NCBI GenBank assembly: GCA_025201805.1
Contig: MU619259.1
Coordinates: 253,109 to 317,108, forward strand
DNA length: 64,000 bases
Origin: Parasitella parasitica NRRL 2501
Lineage: Eukaryota > Fungi > Mucoromycota
Direction: 5' to 3'
Position 1 is the first letter of the stretch. Each line of letters starts with the position of its first letter. Shown here piece after piece: positions 30,207 through 57,205 of the stretch. A program made the position numbers and the translations under genes. The notes beneath the pieces were generated by a model that saw only the letters and a list, made by a program, of their open reading frames with translations, was not told where the DNA came from and searched no databases.

Positions 30207-30934
30207 GCTACTATTTGGTACAATTAATGTGTTTAAAGTTAACAAAACACGTAAATGAGTTTTCCAAAGAAAAACCAGGTTGTACTGGTGTCCGGTCACA
30301 TTCTAATGACAGGTAAAGCATTGGAAAGCTACTCCTTGAAATCAGAGGCAGATTTATTATGTTTCTACATTAAAATGTATTTCTATTAGGATTAAGTACC
30401 TTTTGTTGGTTTTAACAGGTAGGAAACACCCAAGTCAGCACAAATGGGATAAATACTCTTTATAAATGATCTAATCTTTAATGAGCTTTAGAACATTCAT
30501 CCGTAGAAGAGAGGTTCTTGGCATTATGTTTATTTTTGTTTTATTTAAGAAAATCTGATTCAAAAAGGCCGAGTTTTTGAGTGATTATTGTGCCCTCGAA
30601 ACTAATCCTATAAACATATTTAAAGCTATAAGTATACTAAACAGCTTTCATCAGAATTCTTTTTGAACACATGGTCATAAGCTTTCTAACAAAGTTAGAA
30701 AAACATGCTTATTCATAATGATCTGAGAAGAAAGAATCGCAACTCTTTTCGTTTGTTCTCTCATATTATTATACCAGCTGCCCTTTTCTTTTGCCTGTAA
30801 TTATAATGAGAGCTTTGGCCCAAAGGGACAGATATGTATTTCACAAAATAAATCTTTTCAATCAATATCTGAAAGTTTCACACTTTAATAAAAATTATTT
30901 ATTTTCTAAACGTCTCACTTTTATTAAAAAAGAA

Positions 30935-31007
30935 TGCCTGTTAACAGAATTGAACTGCTGACCTTCTGCTTACTAGGCAGACGCTCTGCCAACTGAGCCA
31001 AACAGGC
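30935..31007 (-). tRNA. tRNA-Thr(AGT)
   Basis: Reverse complement GCCTGTTTGGCTCAGTTGGCAGAGCGTCTGCCTAGTAAGCAGAAGGTCAGCAGTTCAATTCTGTTAACAGGCA. 7-bp acceptor stem GCCTGTT/AACAGGC, D arm, anticodon arm TCTGC-CT AGT AA-GCAGA, T loop TTCAATT; oligo-T tract follows downstream. Confidence 0.93.
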
Positions 31008-31441
31008 AGGCACTTTTCTTTCTCCTAACCAATTTTTTACCTAATTTGGAACATTCACTTTTTGTAAGAAATTGTATAACACTTCATCCATCCATCTCGA
31101 TAAAAGCTTCATCATTGCATCCTTCGAAAAAATTAGCTCACCTACTTCGTTGCCTTCAGATTCTCTTTTTTCTGGCTTGAAACGGCCTATTTCGTCTCGA
31201 TCTCCACCTTTATTTGCGTTTGATCTCGTACAACAAATAAAGTCCAAAAGATCCTCAACAACATTTGGAGATCCCAAGCCCGCTCCTCCTGCCCAAATGA
31301 ATCTATCAACACCAGATATGATTGATTTCGGTGTTACTGCCCTCCCGTCTGCCTCTTCTGAGGNNNNNNNNNNNNNNNNNNNNNNNNNNNNNNNNNNNNN
31401 NNNNNNNNNNNNNNNNNNNNNNNNNNNNNNNNNNNNNNNNN

Positions 31442-31760
31442 GATCCCATCCTCTACCTGCCCATTGGTCGATCTGCTCGAAGTCGTCTTGTTCGTTGGCG
31501 TCTTGGCCGGTTCACAAACCGTAGAGAAGAGTGTCCCTGTGCCACAGGCGCTTTTATCTCTCGCGATCACTTTTTGACTTGTCGTGCCCTGGATCCCACT
31601 ATGTTGGATGCTTTGCCCTCTGCTCCTCCTAGTAGTGTCAACCGGATTGACCATGCTCTCAATTGCCTTCCCACAAAGGCATCTGATGGTCCTCCGAGGT
31701 TCTGGTCTGCTTTGTTTGCTCTCCTACATGCCATCGATTGCCTCGTGCATCCTTCGAGAA
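31442..31760 (+). pseudogene. C-terminal fragment of LINE ORF2 (post-RT Cys/His region)
   Basis: DPILYLPIGRSARSRLVRWRLGRF...ECPC...RDHFLTC...IDHALN; closely similar to the ORF at 33527-34135. Confidence 0.75.
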
Positions 31761-31915
31761 ATACTTCGTTGCCTTCAGATTCTCTTTTTTCTGGCTTGAA
31801 ACGGCCTATTTCGTCTCGATCTCCACCTTTATTTGCGTTTGATCTCGTACAACAAATAAAGTCCAAAAGATCCTCAACAACATTTGGAGATCCCAAGCCC
31901 GCTCCTCCTGCCCAA

Positions 31916-32992
31916 ATGAATCTATCAACACCAGATATGATTGATTTCGGTGTTACTGCCCTCCCGTCTGCCTCTTCTGAGGGCGACTTGAACATGGCGT
32001 CCTTCGTTCTTGAAGTTCGCAATCGTTTGAGTCGTCTAGAGTCTGCTCATGCTGAGATCTCTCGGCTAAGAGCAGCTCTAGCAGAATCAGAGTCTGCTCG
32101 TCAGGCTCTTGAAGCTCAAATTTCTCGTCTGTCTGCTCCTTCTGCTGCACCAGCTCCACCAAAAGCCGCCTCTTTTGCTTCTGTTGCTGCTGCTGCTGCT
32201 GCTTCTACCTCTGTCTCTGTCCCTGCTCTTTCTGTTCCTGCTGCTGTTGCTGGCAAAAAGAGAAAAACGAAATCTGCTTCTCCTCCTCCAACTCCCATCA
32301 AAAAGGCTGCTGCCACTGTTAGTCGTTTGTTTGGAAAGCAATCTGATATCCCCTCAGGATATCAGTTTGTATATTATGCTATCTCTCGTCGCCGGCCTCT
32401 GCAGGAGATGCGCCGAATTCTTCAGGGTATCAAACTGAACAATTCCCGCATCTTGGATATTCAGTATCCCACGCCACATGTCATCTCCTACCTCGTCCAC
32501 AACGACTATGTACTCACCTTCACCAGTGGGATGCATTTGAATGGTCGTGGTTGCTCTCCCCTCTCCGACTTTGATCCATGCGATCCCAAAAATCTGCTGG
32601 ATCCAAAGTATGCCTCTCTGTCTCCTTCTCTTCGTGCTGAAAAAGCAGTAGAGGTTGAAAATCTCCGTTGTCTTCGTGCCCTGTCGTTTGTTCGTCGTTC
32701 GGTTCGTCTCTCTGTTGCTCGCTCGTTTCTGTATTATGAAAGAATTACACAGAAGCAATATGATGCTATTCTTGCTGAAGAATTGTCGTTGCGTGCCGCT
32801 GCTGCCCCTGCTAAGGCCCTGTCTCCCACTGCTGCTCAAGATCGCTTGGCTAAAAAACAACGCCTGAGTTATCTCCATAACTTGTTGTTCTTTGACCCTG
32901 CCACTGCCAAAACCTTGGCATATACTGACTCTCCTGTTCTCTCTCCCTCTTCTCCTGTTGACACTCCAATGCCAGAAATTTCTGGTGTTTGA
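31916..32992 (+). CDS. LINE ORF1 (gag-like protein of Mucorales non-LTR retrotransposons)
   Basis: Coiled coil (RLSRLESAHAEISRLRAALAESE), Ala/Pro linker, then GYQFVYY...NNSRILDIQYP...LVHNDY...FDPCDP, which I recognise from Mucorales LINE ORF1 proteins. Confidence 0.75.
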   Translation: MNLSTPDMIDFGVTALPSASSEGDLNMASFVLEVRNRLSRLESAHAEISRLRAALAESESARQALEAQISRLSAPSAAPAPPKAASFASVAAAAAASTSVSVPALSVPAAVAGKKRKTKSASPPPTPIKKAAATVSRLFGKQSDIPSGYQFVYYAISRRRPLQEMRRILQGIKLNNSRILDIQYPTPHVISYLVHNDYVLTFTSGMHLNGRGCSPLSDFDPCDPKNLLDPKYASLSPSLRAEKAVEVENLRCLRALSFVRRSVRLSVARSFLYYERITQKQYDAILAEELSLRAAAAPAKALSPTAAQDRLAKKQRLSYLHNLLFFDPATAKTLAYTDSPVLSPSSPVDTPMPEISGV

Positions 32993-33508
32993 GTCTGTTG
33001 TTCAGGTTAAGTTTGGTTCTTCTGTCTTTTTCTTGTCTCTGCCTGCCTGTGCTGTTGTTTCTTTTGTTCTCTGTTTTTTCCCTTTTTCACTTGGTCTCTG
33101 CTCTCTCTTTTCCTCTTTCTTTCTTTACATTTTACATGTATTGTCTCGGTCTCTCCTTTTTTTCTCGCTTTTTTTGTGCTTTCTCTGGTTGCGTCTGTTA
33201 GTTTTGTTTGTGCTGCTGTATGCCGGTCGAGGTCTCCTCTATTGCACTGTGATCATACACGGCAACTTCTCTATCAGCCTTCCTTCATCTTTTTTCCTGA
33301 CATTACAACTTTTTTCAAGTTTATTCCGACGATCGACCATGCATTTCCTTTCTTGGCATCATCCCGATGATACCTGAATGGATCTGACATCCTAGTTATA
33401 AACTTTTTTATTGTAATAGACTCTCTTAGTATAGCAACCTATGATCATATCGATTAATGCATTAGATACTATTAATAAAAATTCAATCTTAAACTGAGCC
33501 AAGCAGGC

Positions 33509-34225
33509 GCTCTGCGTGCTGATACTTTGCCTTCTGACAGTCTCTTGGTCCTCCTGCGAAATGGTCTGACATATACAAGATTGGATCGTTTTATCTGTGA
33601 AAATCCGCTGTATTTGTCTCTGCCCGATCCTGTTCCCTCTGCGGCTGATTTGAAAGTGGTTTTTGATGAATACTGGCAAGACCAAGTTGATCGACAACTT
33701 ACTGCTGCTGCTACTACTGGTAGAAACACTCTGTTACGAGCTTGTCGCCCTACAACATCACGGCCAGACCCCATCTTGTATCTGCCTATAAGTCGATCTG
33801 CTCGCAGTCGCCTGGTTCGCTGGCGTCTGGGTCGGTTCACGAACATGCGAGAAGAATGTCCTTGTTTGGAGAATGATGCGTTTATTACACGTGACCATCT
33901 TCGGTACTGTAATGCTCTGGATCCTCAGCTATTTGATGCGCTACCGTCTACTGCTCCTGGTGTTCATCCAATCGACAATGCTCTAAACTGTCTACCAGTG
34001 AAGGCATCTTCTGGTCCCCCGGAGTACTGGTCTGCGCTGCTTGCACTGCTACATGCTATTGATTGTCTTGTACATCCTTCGGCTGTGATTGCCTTTGATC
34101 CAGATCCCGGATCATCATGGTTTTCTGCTGGATAAACTTGTCATTGGAGAAAGTTTGTTGTTTTGTCTTCTTTGTGCGGTGCCTCGGTGGTAAGTTATAT
34201 CAAAGTTCCCAGCCGTTGGTGTTCC
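33509..34225 (+). mobile_element. 5'-truncated second LINE copy (ORF2 C-terminus plus start of 3' UTR)
   Basis: Reading frame LRADTLPSDSLL...LLRACRP...DPILYLPISRSARSRLVRWRLGRF...CPC...DHL...C, stop at 34135. Begins immediately after the duplicated tRNA 5' fragment. Confidence 0.8.
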
Positions 34226-34540
34226 CACTATGGCCCTAAGGATGTTCTAGGTGAGAGCATTCGATGGTCTCATATGAGCCTGTTTTTAAGATGCGCTCAA
34301 TGAAACGGTAATTCAGAGCATCGATGCTCTCATGAGAACATCCGCTCATATGAGAGTGTCGAGGGTGCCACGAAAACATCCAGCGCTGCGCTCTTATGAA
34401 CCTTTCGTGTTGCTCATGAGAGCATCCAAATATTAAAATGAAAGGCTTCTTTTTCCCCACTAAATAGCATTTTTTCTGGGCATAATAATTTGATTTTTTA
34501 GGCATAAAATTGATTTTTATTTTTTACTTTTGTACTGGAT
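34226..34540 (+). mobile_element. Left end of a CACTATGG-terminated DNA transposon
   Basis: CACTATGGCCCTAAGGATGTTCT matches the termini at 39546 and 41446; subterminal ATGCTCTCATGAG-like repeats follow. Confidence 0.6.
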
Positions 34541-34851
34541 TGCACTGGAGCATTAAATATTTCTTTTTATTAGCATTGATATTCGCAATGATATAGAATG
34601 CTACGGCAGATACTATAGATACTAAAGTTTATCATCGCCCTTGCTTAGAAACTTACCATACAAATAGATACCCTCTGTACATTTCTGCAGCTAGAATTTA
34701 CATACTGTGAAATACATTCACTATGATGATCTGCATTCCACTTCTAGATTCATCCAGTTACCTTAAATTGATATAAACTACATATGCGCACAGATAATAA
34801 GATGTGCAATACAGATTTATACTATATAAGATATAAGCTAGAGACGGCACC

Positions 34852-37534: not shown

Positions 37535-39545
37535 AAATTACAATTATAATCAAGTTTGGGGTTCTTTATTATAAAAGTATACTGAGGTTTTATCTAGAGA
37601 AAAACATCTTAGTATTTATAGGATTTGAATTGTTGTATATCAGTTCTCATGAATGAAGCATTGATCCTAGAGTCAATGCGTTAATTTGTCGTTGTTTAAT
37701 TTTAGGTTTTAAGGAGAAGCAAATTATGCTGAATGCTTTCACCATTGATGGAGATTTGCGTAACATTGGTTGGCCGTGTTAGGATGGCTATCGTCATATT
37801 TTAGTTATTCTGTTAAAGATATCCTTATCTAGAATGATGGGAAAAACTCATTGAATGACGAGCTGCCATAATTGATATCTTTGTCATTATTATTCTTATT
37901 CTGAATGTCTATTGTGTAAGGGAAATCACTTTGATCAGGAGTGTTTTCCTTCACACGACATTCATTGATAAGGTCTTAAATTGTATTTGTAATTCGATTT
38001 GATTTATATGACTTGATATGTTATTTGAACTCGAATGGCACGAATTGACTATGCGTGACATTTGAGTCTTATTTTTTTTTAGATACTTGCTTTTAGTTAT
38101 ACCATTCCATTGCAACAGCATATGGTCCTATAATAAGTACAAAGTTTTGCAACTAAACCAAGTTTAAGTTCCTAAGTAAAGTAATAAAGCACATTTTGGT
38201 AAACGTACTCGTATAAAACATGTCGTACATGATCTCTGCAATAAAATTGGGATCAATTTTATGTGAAAATAAAAAAAATAAAAAAAATAAAGCCAGAGAA
38301 ATACAATTATAGTCTTTCCACCTTTATTTTCGATTAAAAGAAAACTGAAGAAAAGATACATGCTCTTTAAGAGAGCTTGTATTTATACTACTTGTGAAAT
38401 TGCCTCACTACAGTGAGAATGCTTATTTTACAGCTTATTTGAAGAATGACTTTTTTTGAGACATTCTCTCACTTGTATTGTAGTTGAGATTTCGATATGT
38501 TGGTATTGAAATTGATACTATGGTTTTGGGCAGGCTTGTAATATTTGAGGATCCTGATTATTTCTAATGCGACTGAGCTTTCCTTATTGTGTAATAAACA
38601 AGCCATTTCTGGCATCTAGAATTATTGCAATTGTTTTAACAATTGCATTGTTTATACATGTTTAGAATTTATTTATTTGTAATTATGAGTAGCGTCGTTG
38701 TTCAACATTAGCATGTGCCAGGGTTGTAGGAGATTGTACTTTGATCAGGAGTGCAAGCCTCTACCAACACTTGTTAATGTTTACTTGTGCTTTTCATGTA
38801 TTTCTTTCTTGAATGGATCAGTCATGATCCATCTGGATTTTATTTTAATGTAATTGTGGTGCCATATAATAGGTGCCATTTCATTACAATCTTGAATTCG
38901 ACAAGCTTGGGCCAATTTTGTCTTTTTACTTCAAACTTTGTCCGTCTGTTTCTCTAAAAGCTACTATGACATTTTGGCTTGAGTGATTATTAAAATTTTT
39001 TTAAAACTTAATTATCTATTAGACGTATTAGGTTTTAGATAGATATGTCGAAAAAAATATTTTTTCGGATGTTTTTAGCAGAGGCTTCATTTATTTTCAC
39101 AATTTTCAGAGCAATAAATAGTATTTAAAGATACATGATATAGCAATATACAAATAGAGCTACAACACAGCTACGAAATGGTTTTTGTTTGGTCAAAAAA
39201 TACCAATTTTTGAGCGAGAAAATCTCGATAAACGGAATTGATTTTTACCTTTTTGAATGGCTTCATTTTGGCCCTCTAAACATAGGGCCGGAAAATCGTG
39301 ATTTTTGGCAGATATAATAGAGCTACAGTTGTGAACAAGGTATTGTTGCGTAGGTATTGACATAATGGTTTGTTTGGTCAATTTTATAGAGCTGAATGTG
39401 CTCAAAATATGCTTGATTTTACTCAAAAACTATCAAAAAGGGCGTTTTTTGAATATTTAAAAATCGGTAATAAGAAAAGATCTTGCGATAGCCTTGTAAT
39501 CTATATGGTTAGATGCAGAATTTAATTTTTGTTATAAAACATTAA
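36950..39545. repeat. Fragmented copy of the 20240-22260 repeat with other insertions
   Basis: 36950-37480 ~ 20520-21040; 38130-38230 ~ 21060-21150; 38895-39545 ~ 21160-21830. Confidence 0.75.
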
Positions 39546-41446
39546 CACTATGGCCTCCTGGATGTTCTCGGTAAACATAAATGTGCTCAAATGGGAACAT
39601 TATTAGGGTCATGGGAGTATTTATGTGCTTGTGAGAACTTAAAATAATTTTGCCACAGAATGTGCGCTTATAAAAAAAAAGTTGAGATAGCTCATTTTTA
39701 ATGATATAATATTATTTCTGAGACATTTCGGTTTTTTTTGTGCTGGTAGTAGTAACATTTGCTACCAAATATTCGTTGAAATATTGCATTCCAAAGATCG
39801 CATCTGTTTTGAGTAAATGTTTGTTTATGCTCTCACGATCATACAAATGTTCATCTGAATGAAAGCAAAAAGTGACGAAGAAATACCTGTTTCTAACCAA
39901 AGTGTTGTTCAAGATGTTGAAGAAGACGCTGATGGTAATGATGCTAGCACCAGTAGCAATATACTTGAATAAAGTATATATTTTGTTTGTACATGTTTGC
40001 TTTCAAATGTTGGGATGACCTCTTGTAGCGGTGTTTTTCCATTGGCTTCTTTCTGCATGCTTAATTAGCCCAAAACATTGCATATTATTGTGATGACCGA
40101 ATGCATATTTTAGCTTATTTGTTAGCTCTCCTTGGCCTTTTTCTTTTGTTTTATCTATCNNNNNNNNNNNNNNNNNNNNNNNNNNNNNNNNNNNNNNNNN
40201 NNNNNNNNNNNNNNNNNNNNNNNNNNNNNNNNNNNNNNNNNNNNNNNNNNNNNNNNNNNNNNNNNNNNNNNNNNNNNNNNNNNNNNNNNNNNNNNNNNNN
40301 NNNNNNNNNNNNNNNNNNNNNNNNNNNNNNNNNNNNNNNNNNNNNNNNNNNNNNNNNNNNNNNNACGCAACATATTTTGTATATTGCTATTATCATGGTA
40401 TGTTTTCGAGTTTATTCTAACAAACTATTATTAATCCTTTTGTCAATAATATATAGAGGCTCTGCTCAGTTTAATATTTCATATGAGAGCATGGTATTGC
40501 TATGTGCATTAAATTGTTTGTAGCAACAACTAAGTGACTGACTACTTTTACTGCTGAATATAGGCAATAGCTAAAGATGATGCTATGTATGAATTTTTTT
40601 TTTGCATTATACGTCGTTTGGGTGTCAATGTCAAGTTAGTTTTGAATACTTTTTGGCTTGCTTCTTTTGCTTTATTAATATACACCAAAATTAGATTTCT
40701 TCTATTATTTAGGCATGCCACAGGTATAATTTTGTGCCCAGCATATGAACATATACGATAATATGAGAGGTTTGTTGCTCATTTTTGCCCTGGATTCTAG
40801 AAGTTATGAAGCTAAACCTTGTTACTTTTTTTCAAGATGCTGCCTCCTTGCTTCTTTTTTCGAGTATTATATATGATCTAGTGTATCATCTCTTTTCACA
40901 ATTAATGTAGGTGGTTATTTGTTATTGTCGTCAACAAAATTTATTATACTCATGCACTTTTCTTGTATATAGCAAATACCTCAGCGGCTGCTTCAATTTC
41001 AAATCGGGTAATAGCTAACCTTGCACTGTTTTCCATAATTGCCTGTGTGAACCAAAGGCTACATAATCAAGACAATATTGTATGTAACAATATGAAATAA
41101 AAGCAATAATAAATTACTGGTCCATACTACAAAAATTCAGAAATAAATAAAAGCTACAGCTACATTTTTATACTCAAATTTTACTTTTTTGAGTGTACGG
41201 GCACATTTTTGCTTCATGAGCACATTTTTTCAAGCCTTTTGAGCGTAATTTTAAGCCTACGAAACTAGTAATTTATGTGCTCATTTAAGCATAAAAATGT
41301 GATCATTTAAGATGTTTCAATTTTTGTTCTCGCATGAGCACATTTATCGCCTTAACCTAGCTCGATAAGCACTTTTTTTGGCTCTAAAAAATGTTCCCGT
41401 TCACGCACATCTATATTCTTATGAGAACATCGGCGAGGCCATAGTG
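39546..41446. mobile_element. Non-autonomous/degenerate TIR transposon with CACTATGGCC termini (CACTA/Transib-like)
   Basis: ~70-bp imperfect TIRs CACTATGGCCTCCTGGATGTTCTC... / ...GAGAACATCGGCGAGGCCATAGTG. It interrupts the host repeat, which resumes at 41447 (AAAACATT|...|ATTTAGTACGCA). Confidence 0.8.
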
Positions 41447-42650
41447 TATTTAGTACGCATATCTGGTATACTTATTGCGTTTATAAGATATCTAGCAATG
41501 AACTATGCGAAAAAAGCTCGAAATTGGTTTGGGTCAAATGAAAACATATTGCTGAGATTCAATCTGCTGCCTTTTTAATTTGTTGTTGTAAATGAGTGCA
41601 ATACCTATTTTCGATTGAAGAGCAGAGCATGATTCTAATAATAGGTACCTTGCGCATGTCTCATCAATACGAATTGATAGCTATGATACTGCATGATAGG
41701 AAGTCAAAAACCAATTTTATACACCTTCATTTTTGGAAGAAATAAATACCGCCAGATCAGAGATATAACCCTTTTCCAGGCTTAAAAATATAATTTTCAA
41801 TTACTGTGATGTGTCAATTTCACAACTGGAAGTCAAACAACTCAAGTAAACTCAATCCTGAACGCAATTCAGGAACATATCCCAATGGATCATGTTCCTT
41901 ATTTATAACTCAACATGACATGTTAATGGGCAATAGATGTTGTGCCAGAAAGGCATGAGATTAAGCAATTATTAGATTGGTAATTCTTTGTATACAATGA
42001 CAAGGAATAAGCTATTAATGTACAGTAGAACATGTAATAAACTTGGTATTACATACCAAGTTCAATGTTTAACCATGATGACAAATAGTGTTACAATAGA
42101 TATAATCTAGTATAAAAAGATGGCATTTTCTTATCAATAAAGTCATTAGTTTTTGTGTCTGATTTTATTTCTATAAAGTTATAAATTTTTTTGAGCAGAT
42201 CATATTTATATATCCTCTGCGCATAACAATAGACTCAATATATCGTTCCATTCTCTAAATCACACCATGTCTCACACTTGTATCTTATTCTCCTCCCATC
42301 AGTCCACTTAGATTCACTAGTATATAAACAATCATTTTTTCCATGTAATAAACGAGATCTTTACCTGATTAATTCACAACTGTTTTATTTAAATAATTTC
42401 TCATTCTGATAAATCATATTATTCAAATTTGCTTTTTTGTTTGGACGCCACACCTCATATTCGATTTTCAATTTTCAAATTTAGGGTAACCTTCAGGATC
42501 ATTTTGAGGTATGGATTTGGGGTCCACCAAAAAAAGTATACATTCCAGTTCTAGTACAATAGCTGTATCTCAACCACGCTTTCCGAATTCCAATGTCTAT
42601 CTTAGTTGTAGATATAACGCCAAAACAAAATTTTGCTGATTTTATAGCAA
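41447..42650. repeat. Continuation of the dispersed repeat plus degenerate element fragments
   Basis: 41476-41800 nearly identical to 63650-64000 (inverted); 41805-41898 ~ 63470-63560 and 42255-42375 ~ 62830-62950 (inverted); 42430-42650 ~ 20830-21040. Confidence 0.75.
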
Positions 42651-56392: not shown

Positions 56393-57205
56393 TAAGCATG
56401 CGTAAATACCCTTTACTTTCTACAATATAATACATGCATATATAAAAACATACGCTGCTCTATCATTATTCTCCAAAATCGTCTTACTACGTATTTTTCT
56501 CTCTCTTTTACAAAAAAGAGTTTTTAATTAAATTGTTGGTTTCGTCTCGTAACGATTTACATCAAATGTCTTTGTATGCTGATTAAACTAGCTTCTTGTT
56601 TCGTGGATCGTGCGTTGAAGTGTCAAAAAACATTCCTGAAACAATGCAAATCATTTGACAACTGAAGATGTAATATTGACGGCTCTATTCGGACCGAATC
56701 TCGAAATTCGAAAGCTGCTCGNNNNNNNNNNAAAAAAAAAAAAAAAAAAAGTCTCAATTATATAGAGTACAAAAAAGGAGACATCTCTAATCAACAATCA
56801 ATCAGAATCGATACAGTACATCATTAAGTTTGAGTTTACATCACTATATAACTGCGAAACAACAAAAAAAGAAAGCCTTGTGGATAATTTGCCACCTATC
56901 GTCTGAAATTAGTGTCTTGAATACGATAGCCTGCCATTGAATTAGCCTAGCAGTATACAGCCCCTCTTAAAAGAAGTAATGTAAATTTTTAGACTAATTA
57001 CTAGGCTGTATTTCTTGCATACGGTGATTACAAGTCTTTTTTCAACATCCTCAAGATCTATGGAAAAAGTTGATGCCGTACTGAATAGCGAGACAGATAA
57101 CTGGGTTTCACCGGGCCCGCATTATTTCGAATGTCATGATAAGCTAGAAGTAGGCCTTCTTCCTTCTTCTTTCTTGCGATTGTTCACTTCATTCCATATC
57201 TAGAA

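Follow-up and report, generated by a model that had tools for sequence, protein, structure and literature searches.

In the 64-kb stretch of Parasitella parasitica NRRL 2501 DNA analyzed here (the window), the beginning of a tRNA-Thr gene occurs twice, once in the gene itself and once directly behind the tail of a LINE. This raises the question of how the second copy came to lie there. A sequence-only reading of the locus had proposed a tRNA-targeting retrotransposon, whose target-site duplication rebuilds a complete tRNA gene head-to-head with the inserted element. This core claim was borne out across the whole element family and in five other Mucoromycotina genomes, and the anatomy of the locus had to be redrawn in several respects.

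The tRNA-Thr locus

ARAGORN called a single tRNA in the window, a tRNA-Thr(AGT) at 30934-31008 on the minus strand, and Rfam RF00005 placed the gene at 30935-31007 on the same strand (68.3 bits), in agreement with the +1 position of 31007 that the sequence-only reading had assigned. The gene has a perfect acceptor stem and, beyond its 3' end, a T-run terminator. The 17-mer at 30991-31007, corresponding to tRNA nucleotides 1-17, is repeated at 33492-33508 with 16 of 17 positions identical (A to G at 33503), directly 3' of a LINE tail ending in AATAAAAATTCAATCTTA, as had also been claimed. No further match to this 17-mer with up to three mismatches was found in the whole 64 kb, the chance expectation being 0.12; other matches to AACTGAGC in the window (28929, 40464 and 43373) were set aside as chance occurrences. 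ORF1-like and ORF2-like LINE sequence does lie between both 17-mer copies, but it is not the single insertion first envisaged: 31008-33494 consists of parts of at least two copies and a foreign ORF2 fragment, with a discontinuous gap among them. The features are arranged as follows.

30935-31007, minus strand: intact tRNA-Thr(AGT) gene (ARAGORN; Rfam RF00005, 68.3 bits; comparison with four paralogues)
30994-31007, no strand assigned: left copy of the 14-bp target segment (tRNA nucleotides 1-14), inside the intact gene
31008-31363, plus strand: A-type (ORF1-only) copy 1, 5' part, with 5'UTR and the start of ORF1 (ATG at 31297)
31364-31441, no strand assigned: assembly gap (N run), caused by repeats, its sides discontinuous
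31442-31754, plus strand: C-terminal ORF2 fragment from an autonomous subfamily, with 98.7% identity to the C269 element
31746-31754, plus strand: 9-nt microhomology TGCATCCTT at the joint of the ORF2 fragment with position ~112 of the A-type 5'UTR (from the alignment)
31755-33494, plus strand: A-type copy 2, 5'-truncated, with the remaining 5'UTR, an ORF1 homologue, a ~500-nt 3'UTR and the tail ...AATAAAAATTCAATCTTAAAC
33495-33508, no strand assigned: right copy (remnant) of tRNA-Thr nucleotides 1-14, 13 of 14 identical, G at 33503
33509-34225, plus strand: 5'-truncated copy of an autonomous subfamily that follows the remnant in the stack and retains ~200 aa from the end of ORF2 together with part of the 3'UTR

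Copy 1 stands head-to-head against the tRNA +1 and ends at the assembly gap; its 5' end is 99-100% identical to those of copies C11, C162, C131, C27 and C154, all of which adjoin tRNAs. The ORF2 fragment ends 65 nt short of the stop codon of the C269-type ORF2, and the ORF1 homologue of copy 2 (31916-32992) encodes 358 aa. Behind the remnant, the truncated copy agrees with a 1606-nt contig (about 20x unique depth) except for one difference. No third Thr remnant is present behind this copy in the window, since an unrelated repeat interrupts it at 34225. The two 17-mers do not mark the two ends of one insertion; they represent consecutive copies of one target segment, and the stacked array to which they belong is broken by an assembly gap.

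The autonomous element and its ORF1-only derivative

The autonomous element is about 4.9 kb long and consists of a 5'UTR starting with ATCTCTTTCG, ORF1 (~320 aa), ORF2 (1123 aa) and a 3' tail of the form ...AATAAAAA-CAATCTT(T)A-A(A/C/T)C. Pfam searches of ORF2 retrieved RVT_1 (E = 3.4e-21 in C128) and Exo_endo_phos_2 (E = 1.5e-10, residues 122-244), with PF03372 also found in homologues, and the best relatives in the PDB were human L1 ORF2p, followed by R2 proteins. There are no LTRs, the sole flanking repeat being the tRNA-derived segment, and 5'-truncated copies occur (at 33509 in the window, and C3, 70 nt). With a reverse transcriptase, an AP-endonuclease, a target-site duplication and 5' truncation but no LTRs, the family belongs to the APE-type non-LTR retrotransposons. 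Its tail is not a poly(A) or simple-repeat tail; the end is fixed as ...AATAAAAANCAATCTTAAAC without an A-run (the 'stringent' tail type).

The element beside the window tRNA is a non-autonomous, ORF1-only derivative of this family. This A-type derivative is ~1.9 kb long (1882 bp span in C131) and combines a diverged ORF1 with the family 3' tail, as recognized by alignment. The C286 and C90 copies run from 5'UTR through ORF1 to 3'UTR with neither a gap nor an ORF2. Since the A-type carries no ORF2, it would presumably be mobilized in trans by an autonomous partner. HAL1-type 'half-LINEs' are ORF1-only derivatives as well, and the A-type resembles them in keeping an ORF1 homologue, the 5'UTR and the family 3' tail in the absence of ORF2; it differs in that the window ORF1 is only 31-38% identical to the assembled autonomous ORF1s (E = 1e-28 to 6e-29). 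Because of this low identity, the true partner of the A-type may be a subfamily that is missing from the assembly.

Neither the window ORF1 nor its autonomous counterpart matched a Pfam family significantly, and the C-terminal pieces of ORF2 gave no such match either. An AlphaFold model of ORF1 built on an 11-sequence alignment (mean pLDDT 65.5) predicts a coiled coil, a linker, a beta-alpha-beta domain and helices. A Foldseek search of this model against the PDB retrieved nothing at E <= 0.001, with weak ferredoxin-like or RRM-like rows only, so that likeness to L1 ORF1p is unsupported. An ORF of 130-142 aa overlapping the end of ORF1 in A-type copies has no similarity to ORF2. RNAalifold detected no conserved structure in the 3' tails.

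Junctions with tRNA genes and the proposed insertion mechanism

A-type 3' ends were collected by BLAST independently of their target. In all 12 distinct places the 3' end is followed by AAC, TGAGCYA and seven variable nucleotides, and, read on the opposite strand, these nucleotides are the beginnings of different tRNAs (Thr, Ile variants, Phe, Lys-like and Ala-like). The same 3' junction is found in the autonomous copies C128, C16, C269 and C274, and 15 of the 69 AATCTTAAAC 10-mers in the genome are followed by TGAGCYA. At the opposite end, the full-length A-type 5' ends adjoin intact tRNA genes in every case (6/6), and the 14 autonomous 5' ends adjoin either intact tRNAs (8) or remnants (6). 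Overall, 20/20 full-length 5' ends thus lie at a tRNA +1, head-to-head (14), or at a remnant behind another copy (6), and control patterns for the 5'-end junctions gave 0 matches.

Crossing Rfam tRNA coordinates with 5'UTR matches added C99 and C16 to the occupied genes. In all, elements were located at the +1 of at least 17 tRNA genes, among them 15 of the 63 tRNAs scored from the candidates, in an assembly that is fragmented and in which young copies are collapsed. Apart from the BLAST collection of 3' ends, the census searches began from tRNA-like or element-end patterns, and insertions outside tRNA genes could escape them; the later part of the census drew on coordinates and matched strings alone. 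All five tRNA-Phe(GAA) genes in the assembly are occupied, which suggests that occupied genes are presumably functional. Single elements with exactly matched flanks were found at tRNA-Ile genes in C11, C154 and C131, the outer flank of the C131 element being unique, non-repeat sequence; the last seven bases after the tail vary between copies, and in these three they equal the acceptor stem of the tRNA at the opposite end. Three tRNA-Thr paralogues have unrelated upstream flanks and represent paralogous, not orthologous, empty sites. The 11-mer DAACTGAGCYA was no commoner than its control and was set aside as evidence.

The duplicated segment had been described as the first 17 nt of the tRNA. 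That it is the tRNA 5' segment counted from +1 holds, but its target-derived part is 14 bp long (nucleotides 1-14): Phe and Lys-like targets have other bases at nucleotides 15-17, and AAC is therefore the end of the element itself. The intact sequence is ...CAGCTGG in Phe genes and ...CAATCGG in Lys-like genes, whereas their remnants beside the tail read ...CAGTT. In one Rhizopus array the A-N-C triplet varies with the element subfamily, and AAC coincides with nucleotides 15-17 of both tRNA-Thr and tRNA-Ile. A duplication of 14 bp would move the first, priming nick from T17|G18, where it had been put, to A14|N15.

The same junction is present in Mucor velutinosus, a JGI Mucor-like genome, M. 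saturninus, Rhizopus stolonifer, Phycomyces and Umbelopsis. Its preservation from Mucor to Umbelopsis points to an old and stable relationship between the element and tRNA genes.

These results make it very probable that insertions by a single APE-type LINE family, which integrates sequence-specifically into tRNA genes, have piled up at the locus. Judging from the junctions, the endonuclease would nick the tRNA-like strand in the D-arm/A-box after T8-R-G-C-T-C-A14, and the freed 3'-OH would serve as primer for copying the element RNA into cDNA from its tail (target-primed reverse transcription). The cut in the second strand would fall precisely at the -1/+1 boundary of the mature tRNA sequence, so that nucleotides 1-14 would be duplicated: one copy would end up in a complete tRNA gene, head-to-head with the 5' end of the element, and the other would form the 14-nt remnant behind the element tail. 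The gene, being rebuilt, could then be targeted again, and repeated insertion would generate arrays of the order tRNA - element - remnant - element - remnant, such as the one in the window.

The target might instead be set mainly through contacts with the Pol III machinery (TFIIIB/TFIIIC), on the pattern of Dictyostelium TRE5-A or yeast Ty3, with the endonuclease not reading the D-arm and the cut positions reflecting the geometry of a bound complex. The second cut falls exactly at the mature tRNA 5' end whatever the acceptor stem, as such contacts would predict, and remnants that contain TRGCTCA but lack the rest of the gene were never seen re-used, new copies always lying on the tRNA side; moreover, the ORF1 protein of TRE5-A binds TFIIIB (PMC5911963). 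However, the first nick is nucleotide-exact and TRGCTCA occupies nucleotides 8-14 in all targets seen, which argues for sequence recognition, and factor-tethered LINEs such as TRE5 use a window of ~10 bp and not one bond (PMC5911963). We therefore consider targeting mainly by Pol III contacts unlikely, although sequence recognition and Pol III tethering are not mutually exclusive.

Sequence-specific integration by the family would also be compatible with a window arrangement that is partly a product of scaffolding or assembly, in which case the remnant at 33495-33508 and the sequence following it may not lie beside this tRNA-Thr. Identical repeats flank the N gap, the 221 nt before it (31143-31363) being 100% identical to 31762-31982. 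In contigs of four public runs, the sequence past 31363 continues into ORF1 (equal to window 31984-31996) and more ORF2 precedes the sequence at 31442; the two sides of the gap are demonstrably discontinuous, and the ORF at 31322-32992, which spans the N run, is an artefact. Lost at the gap are the remainder of copy 1 and the remnant of its target, and probably also the greater part of an autonomous element. The chimeric joint between ORF2 and 5'UTR at 31754/31755 was not reproduced in contigs of four other public runs, and the G variant that makes the one-base mismatch of the remnant at 33503 is carried by no intact tRNA gene in the assembly. Against this, the remnant is of Thr type, retaining the Thr-specific C at the ninth base of the 17-mer (G9 of the tRNA); the assembly contains only five Thr(AGT)-type acceptor genes, all with the A variant, and the present gene is the nearest of them. 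In better assemblies, arrays of this stacked kind, with the same remnant, are what is normally found. A misplaced remnant is thus improbable, and we retain the stacked array as the description of the locus.

Finally, that the 17-mer is the element's own tRNA-derived tail, or a chance match beside a coincidental tRNA, is refuted almost beyond doubt by the matched, tRNA-specific flanks: its first ten bases (AACTGAGCYA) are nearly constant among copies and three of them (AAC) did prove to be element sequence, but the last seven are copy-specific and mirror the tRNA at the other end in C11, C154 and C131, the Thr-specific C is kept in the window, chance would supply 0.12 matches even with three mismatches allowed, and no full-length 5' end among the 20 departs from a tRNA +1 or a remnant.

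Significance and known systems

Site-specific LINEs and tRNA-associated retroelements are each already known. New, in that we found it nowhere in the literature searched, is the combination of the two in an APE-type LINE whose cut falls inside a tRNA gene, at a motif that several tRNA species have in common, and which leaves the gene whole; as the sequence-only reading had supposed, no description of this geometry in Mucorales was found either. The wider picture, which in our judgment has an even chance of holding, is that of an ancient, Mucoromycotina-wide and undescribed APE-type LINE lineage for which the D-arm/A-box of many tRNA species may be a nucleotide-exact landing site, with a second cut at +1 by which the gene would always be rebuilt. 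Whole tRNA families (all five tRNA-Phe) would then have the element 5'UTR as their upstream DNA, Pol III initiation and the element promoter would have co-evolved, and tRNA genes would be renewable safe harbours on which LINE arrays grow.

Insertion of this kind is a new answer to the safe-site problem, the gene staying whole because the duplication begins at +1. It accounts for the tendency of short-read assemblies to break around tRNA genes in these fungi, a host group that includes the agents of mucormycosis, and it gives the 'other LINEs' of Mucor genomes a specific location after all. The replacement of native upstream DNA at every tRNA-Phe gene offers a natural experiment on Pol III promoter requirements, and a compact endonuclease/reverse transcriptase with a defined, multicopy and apparently harmless site could serve for targeted insertion in fungi.

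A described element from the same host group is Grem-LINE1 of Mucor, an L1-like, ~6-kb, pericentric LINE with zinc fingers in ORF1 and zf-RVT in ORF2 (bioRxiv 10.1101/706580). Both occur in the same host group (Mucorales, Umbelopsidales) and are two-ORF LINEs with APE and RT. Identity is ruled out on domain content, as ORF2 of the present family has RVT_1 and Exo_endo_phos_2 only, with no zf-RVT, and its ORF1 no zf-CCHC (Pfam, E <= 0.01). Grem-LINE1 is confined to pericentric regions; the present copies lie on many contigs beside tRNA genes. Other LINE families of this genome show 30-42% identity in the ORF2 C-terminus, and the Mucor literature examined makes no mention of tRNA targeting.

In yeast, Ty3 likewise takes a precise position at the tRNA 5' end and leaves the gene functional (PMC5911963), but it is an LTR element that uses an integrase and TFIIIB, makes a 5-bp duplication and inserts in both orientations. 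Site-specific LINEs include Keno (U2), Mutsu (5S) and Dewa (tRNA-Leu spacer) of the Tx1 group and R1/R2 (28S), and tRNA-specific ones are NeSL-1_TV (tRNA-Pro), LIN15_SM (tRNA-Arg) and LIN25_SM (tRNA-Glu) (PMC3706591, PMC4640811). The present family shares with the Tx1, R1, R2 and NeSL elements a nucleotide-exact insertion, a constant orientation and a fixed target duplication. The use of one bond, in one orientation, of a multicopy RNA gene is a likeness to Tx1, R1 and R2 in behaviour. Most Tx1/R1/R2-type elements interrupt their target gene or occupy a spacer, whereas the present duplication restores the gene. NeSL-type tRNA elements have a restriction-like endonuclease and use one tRNA species each, in contrast to the APE-type family described here and its motif common to Thr, Ile, Phe, Lys-like and Ala-like tRNAs.

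The analogy with TRE5 proved apt, as did that with Tx1/R2-type elements. Dictyostelium TRE5-A and NLTR-A of D. purpureum are L1-type, tRNA-gene-targeted LINEs with APE, RT and two ORFs, and NLTR-A has its insertion site upstream of the mature coding sequence at a distance of just 2-6 bp (PMC5911963). TRE5 belongs to an amoebozoan host and integrates within a window 40-54 bp upstream of the gene, guided by contacts of ORF1 with TFIIIB; the 5' end of the fungal element, in contrast, stands at +1, and its first nick would fall inside the gene. The fungal family and TRE5-A/NLTR-A nevertheless agree in occupying the 5' side of tRNA genes, in opposite transcriptional orientation, and in leaving the tRNA gene intact.

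The target segment and its junctions with tRNA genes

The sole tRNA gene in the 64-kb window is a minus-strand tRNA-Thr(AGT) (ARAGORN), which Rfam places at 30935-31007 with 68.3 bits; its +1 is therefore 31007, as proposed in the sequence-only reading. The first 17 nt of this tRNA (30991-31007) indeed recur with one mismatch directly after a LINE-like tail, at 33492-33508, immediately preceded by an AT-rich sequence with AATAAA. This is the only further occurrence, and allowing up to three mismatches retrieved no additional match in the 64 kb (chance expectation 0.12).

Used as a DNA query against the source genome, 31750-33508 gave 47 matches. Family 3' ends were then collected by BLAST with the element's last 112 nt, excluding the target from the query, and at 12 of 12 distinct places the element was followed by AAC, TGAGC(T/C)A and 7 variable bases. 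On the opposite strand these flanks correspond to tRNA nucleotides 1-17, the 7 variable bases being acceptor stems. The 5' ends, gathered likewise, adjoin either +1 of a complete tRNA gene on the minus strand or a remnant (a copy of the tRNA's 5' segment lacking the rest of the gene) preceded by the tail of another copy. In a pattern census, each of the 6 full-length 5' ends belonging to the subfamily of the window copies lay at an intact tRNA gene, as did 8/14 of those of the autonomous subfamily, the other 6/14 lying at remnants; neither 5'-end search returned a match for its reversed control pattern. The suggested head-to-head placement of the element and a complete tRNA is thus a property of the family. 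Crossing 5'UTR matches with Rfam tRNA coordinates added cases on contigs C99 and C16; with a truncated copy on C3 also counted, the tRNA genes occupied at +1 number at least 17, among them 15 of the 63 scored tRNAs. Exact matching flanks surround single elements at tRNA-Ile genes on C11, C154 and C131, the outer flank on C131 being unique DNA. The four other tRNA-Thr(AGT) genes comprise three with unrelated upstream flanks and one (C11:2950) bearing an autonomous element. The finding is real, and at the family level we have high confidence in its main interpretation, a tRNA-targeting retrotransposon that regenerates its target.

Searches with the Phe anticodon arm and the Phe 5' end retrieved the identical five genes. 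Each of these, the full tRNA-Phe(GAA) set of the assembly (on C27, C137, C145, C162 and C185), has a LINE 5' end at +1, and native upstream DNA has been replaced at every one of them. Since tRNA-Phe(GAA) is needed and all copies are occupied, the occupied tRNA genes are presumably functional.

A compact stack was seen on C3 (488089-488263; 1426-1600 of local stretch L026), consisting of tRNA-Lys(CTT), 2 nt, a 70-nt 5'-truncated copy, a remnant, 3 nt (GGC) and a full-length autonomous element.

Length of the duplication and inferred position of the cuts

The duplication had been taken to be 17 nt long, but the remnants of other targets point to 14 bp. The sequence is ...GCTCAGCTGG in each of the five intact tRNA-Phe genes but ...GCTCAGTT beside the tail in the three Phe-type remnants; likewise, Lys-like genes have ...GCTCAATCGG where their remnants show ...GCTCAGTT. 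Nucleotides 15-17 are GTC in other occupied genes. Because the remnants differ from the intact targets at these positions, the AAC beside the tail is the element's end and not a copy of the target. In other species the three positions are A-N-C, varying by element subfamily inside one array. In the window remnant, position 9 still carries the base specific to tRNA-Thr, so at least nucleotides 1-9 are target-derived; nucleotides 10-14 are invariant across the targets seen. The simplest reading is a 14-bp duplication, 30994-31007 and 33495-33508 (13/14 identical). The differing G at 33503 is absent from all intact genes of the assembly and hence represents a later change or an error. The apparent 17-nt repeat arises because AAC coincides with nucleotides 15-17 in Thr and Ile targets.

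On this simplest reading, the tRNA-like strand would be nicked between A14 and N15 rather than at T17|G18 as first suggested, and the opposite strand would be cut between −1 and +1, where the earlier proposal stands, duplicating 14 bp. Alternatively, the nick may fall at 17|18, with unpaired primer bases subsequently trimmed.

Organization of the window locus

The two 17-mers in the window are not the two ends of one insertion, as had been supposed, but successive copies of one target segment:

Features of the locus
30935-31007, minus strand: intact tRNA-Thr gene (ARAGORN, Rfam)
31008-31363, plus strand: ORF1-only element copy 1, head-to-head with its 5' end at tRNA +1, followed by a gap
31442-31754, plus strand: fragment of an ORF2 from another subfamily; 98.7% identity to the C-terminal end of ORF2 in an autonomous element on C269
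31755-33494, plus strand: ORF1-only element copy 2, 5'-truncated
33495-33508: remnant, 13/14 identical to tRNA segment 30994-31007
33509-34225, plus strand: autonomous copy, 5'-truncated, interrupted by an unrelated repeat

This order is the stacked pattern expected from repeated insertion into a rebuilt tRNA gene, and the same pattern occurs in better assemblies. ORF1 and ORF2 sequences are both present, as previously read, but they do not form one element: the ORF2 piece belongs to another subfamily, there are two ORF1-only copies, and the two sides of the gap are not continuous. The N run is preceded by 221 nt (31143-31363) that recur with 100% identity at 31762-31982. Past 31363, contigs from four public sequencing runs, each from a different study, read 13 nt equal to 31984-31996, which is ORF1 and not the sequence at 31442, and upstream of the latter they contain more ORF2. 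The ORF read through the Ns (31322-32992) is therefore an artefact. At its other end, the ORF2 fragment fuses with position ~112 of the next copy's 5'UTR via a 9-nt microhomology, TGCATCCTT (31746-31754), and the open reading frame continues across it. This joint is missing from the contigs of all four runs, whose 810-nt contig proceeds to the usual ORF2 terminus; either a template switch by the reverse transcriptase or a misassembly may have produced the joint. The window's local structure is only partly resolved.

The repeat interrupting the truncated LINE copy (34226-34695) starts CACTATGGCC, has 77% identity in inverted orientation to C128:6267-6683, and is probably a DNA transposon or MITE; inverted-repeat ends resembling its own occur at 39545-39569 and 41423-41447. 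Two further N gaps (40160-40364 and 56722-56731) lie away from the locus.

The elements, their conservation and known counterparts

Gap-free copies on C286 and C90 consist of a 5'UTR, a single ORF (425-441 codons stop to stop), a ~500-nt 3'UTR and a tail; the copy on C131 measures 1882 bp. Identity between this ORF and autonomous ORF1 is 31-38%, and within the last ~60 nt both forms have a conserved box and end in ...AATAAAAANCAATCTTAAAC. The window element thus represents an ORF1-only derivative whose mobilisation presumably occurs in trans. A second open frame of 130-142 codons overlaps the ORF1 end in such copies (L004:1619-2029, L002:1594-1983, L009:2504-2914); it has no Pfam match and no similarity to ORF2, and may be non-coding. 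The uninterrupted autonomous copy on C128 encodes a 324-aa ORF1 and an overlapping 1123-aa ORF2, with tail and remnant ~285 nt past the ORF2 stop. Autonomous ORF2 carries Exo_endo_phos_2 and RVT_1 domains, its best solved-structure relative being human L1 ORF2p, and a long JGI contig holds tandem arrays with a period of ~4.86 kb.

Contig depth suggests ~15-20 ORF1-only copies and ~20 copies of the subfamily at 33509-34225, the latter far above the number assembled. A 1606-nt contig whose depth in the four runs is ~20 times unique matches positions 33509-34191 with a single difference, and the best other assembled copy has only ~81% protein-level identity; this young high-copy subfamily is largely absent from the assembly.

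Mucorales are rich in ORF2 homologues, the closest named ones being from Mucor velutinosus (92% identity), which makes a Mucor-like host likely. Homologues were examined in M. velutinosus, M. saturninus, a JGI Mucor-like genome, Rhizopus stolonifer, Phycomyces blakesleeanus and, beyond the Mucorales, Umbelopsis isabellina; in all of them the flanks consist of tail, A-N-C, T(G/A)AGCTA and 7 nt, and arrays are frequent. The shared junction implies that target choice is older than the Mucorales/Umbelopsidales split.

Although tRNA-targeted and sequence-specific LINEs are known, the targeting by this family is apparently undescribed: no account of it was found in the literature searched. A curated Mucor TE survey reports that only GremLINE1 occupies a specific region (PMC9963178); Grem-LINE1, the Mucor LINE described so far, differs from the present family in its domains and pericentric location. 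In the Rhizopus genome paper, Ty3-like LTR elements, not LINEs, are associated with tRNA genes. The reviewed tRNA-associated retroelements, namely the LINEs TRE5, TRE3 and NLTR-A/B and the LTR elements Ty1 and Ty3, include none from Mucoromycotina and, unlike the present family, none cutting inside the gene (PMC5911963). Sequence-specific LINEs in tRNA genes or spacers (Dewa, NeSL-1_TV, LIN15_SM and LIN25_SM; PMC3706591, PMC4640811) are each tied to a single tRNA species, and those within genes are restriction-like-endonuclease elements.
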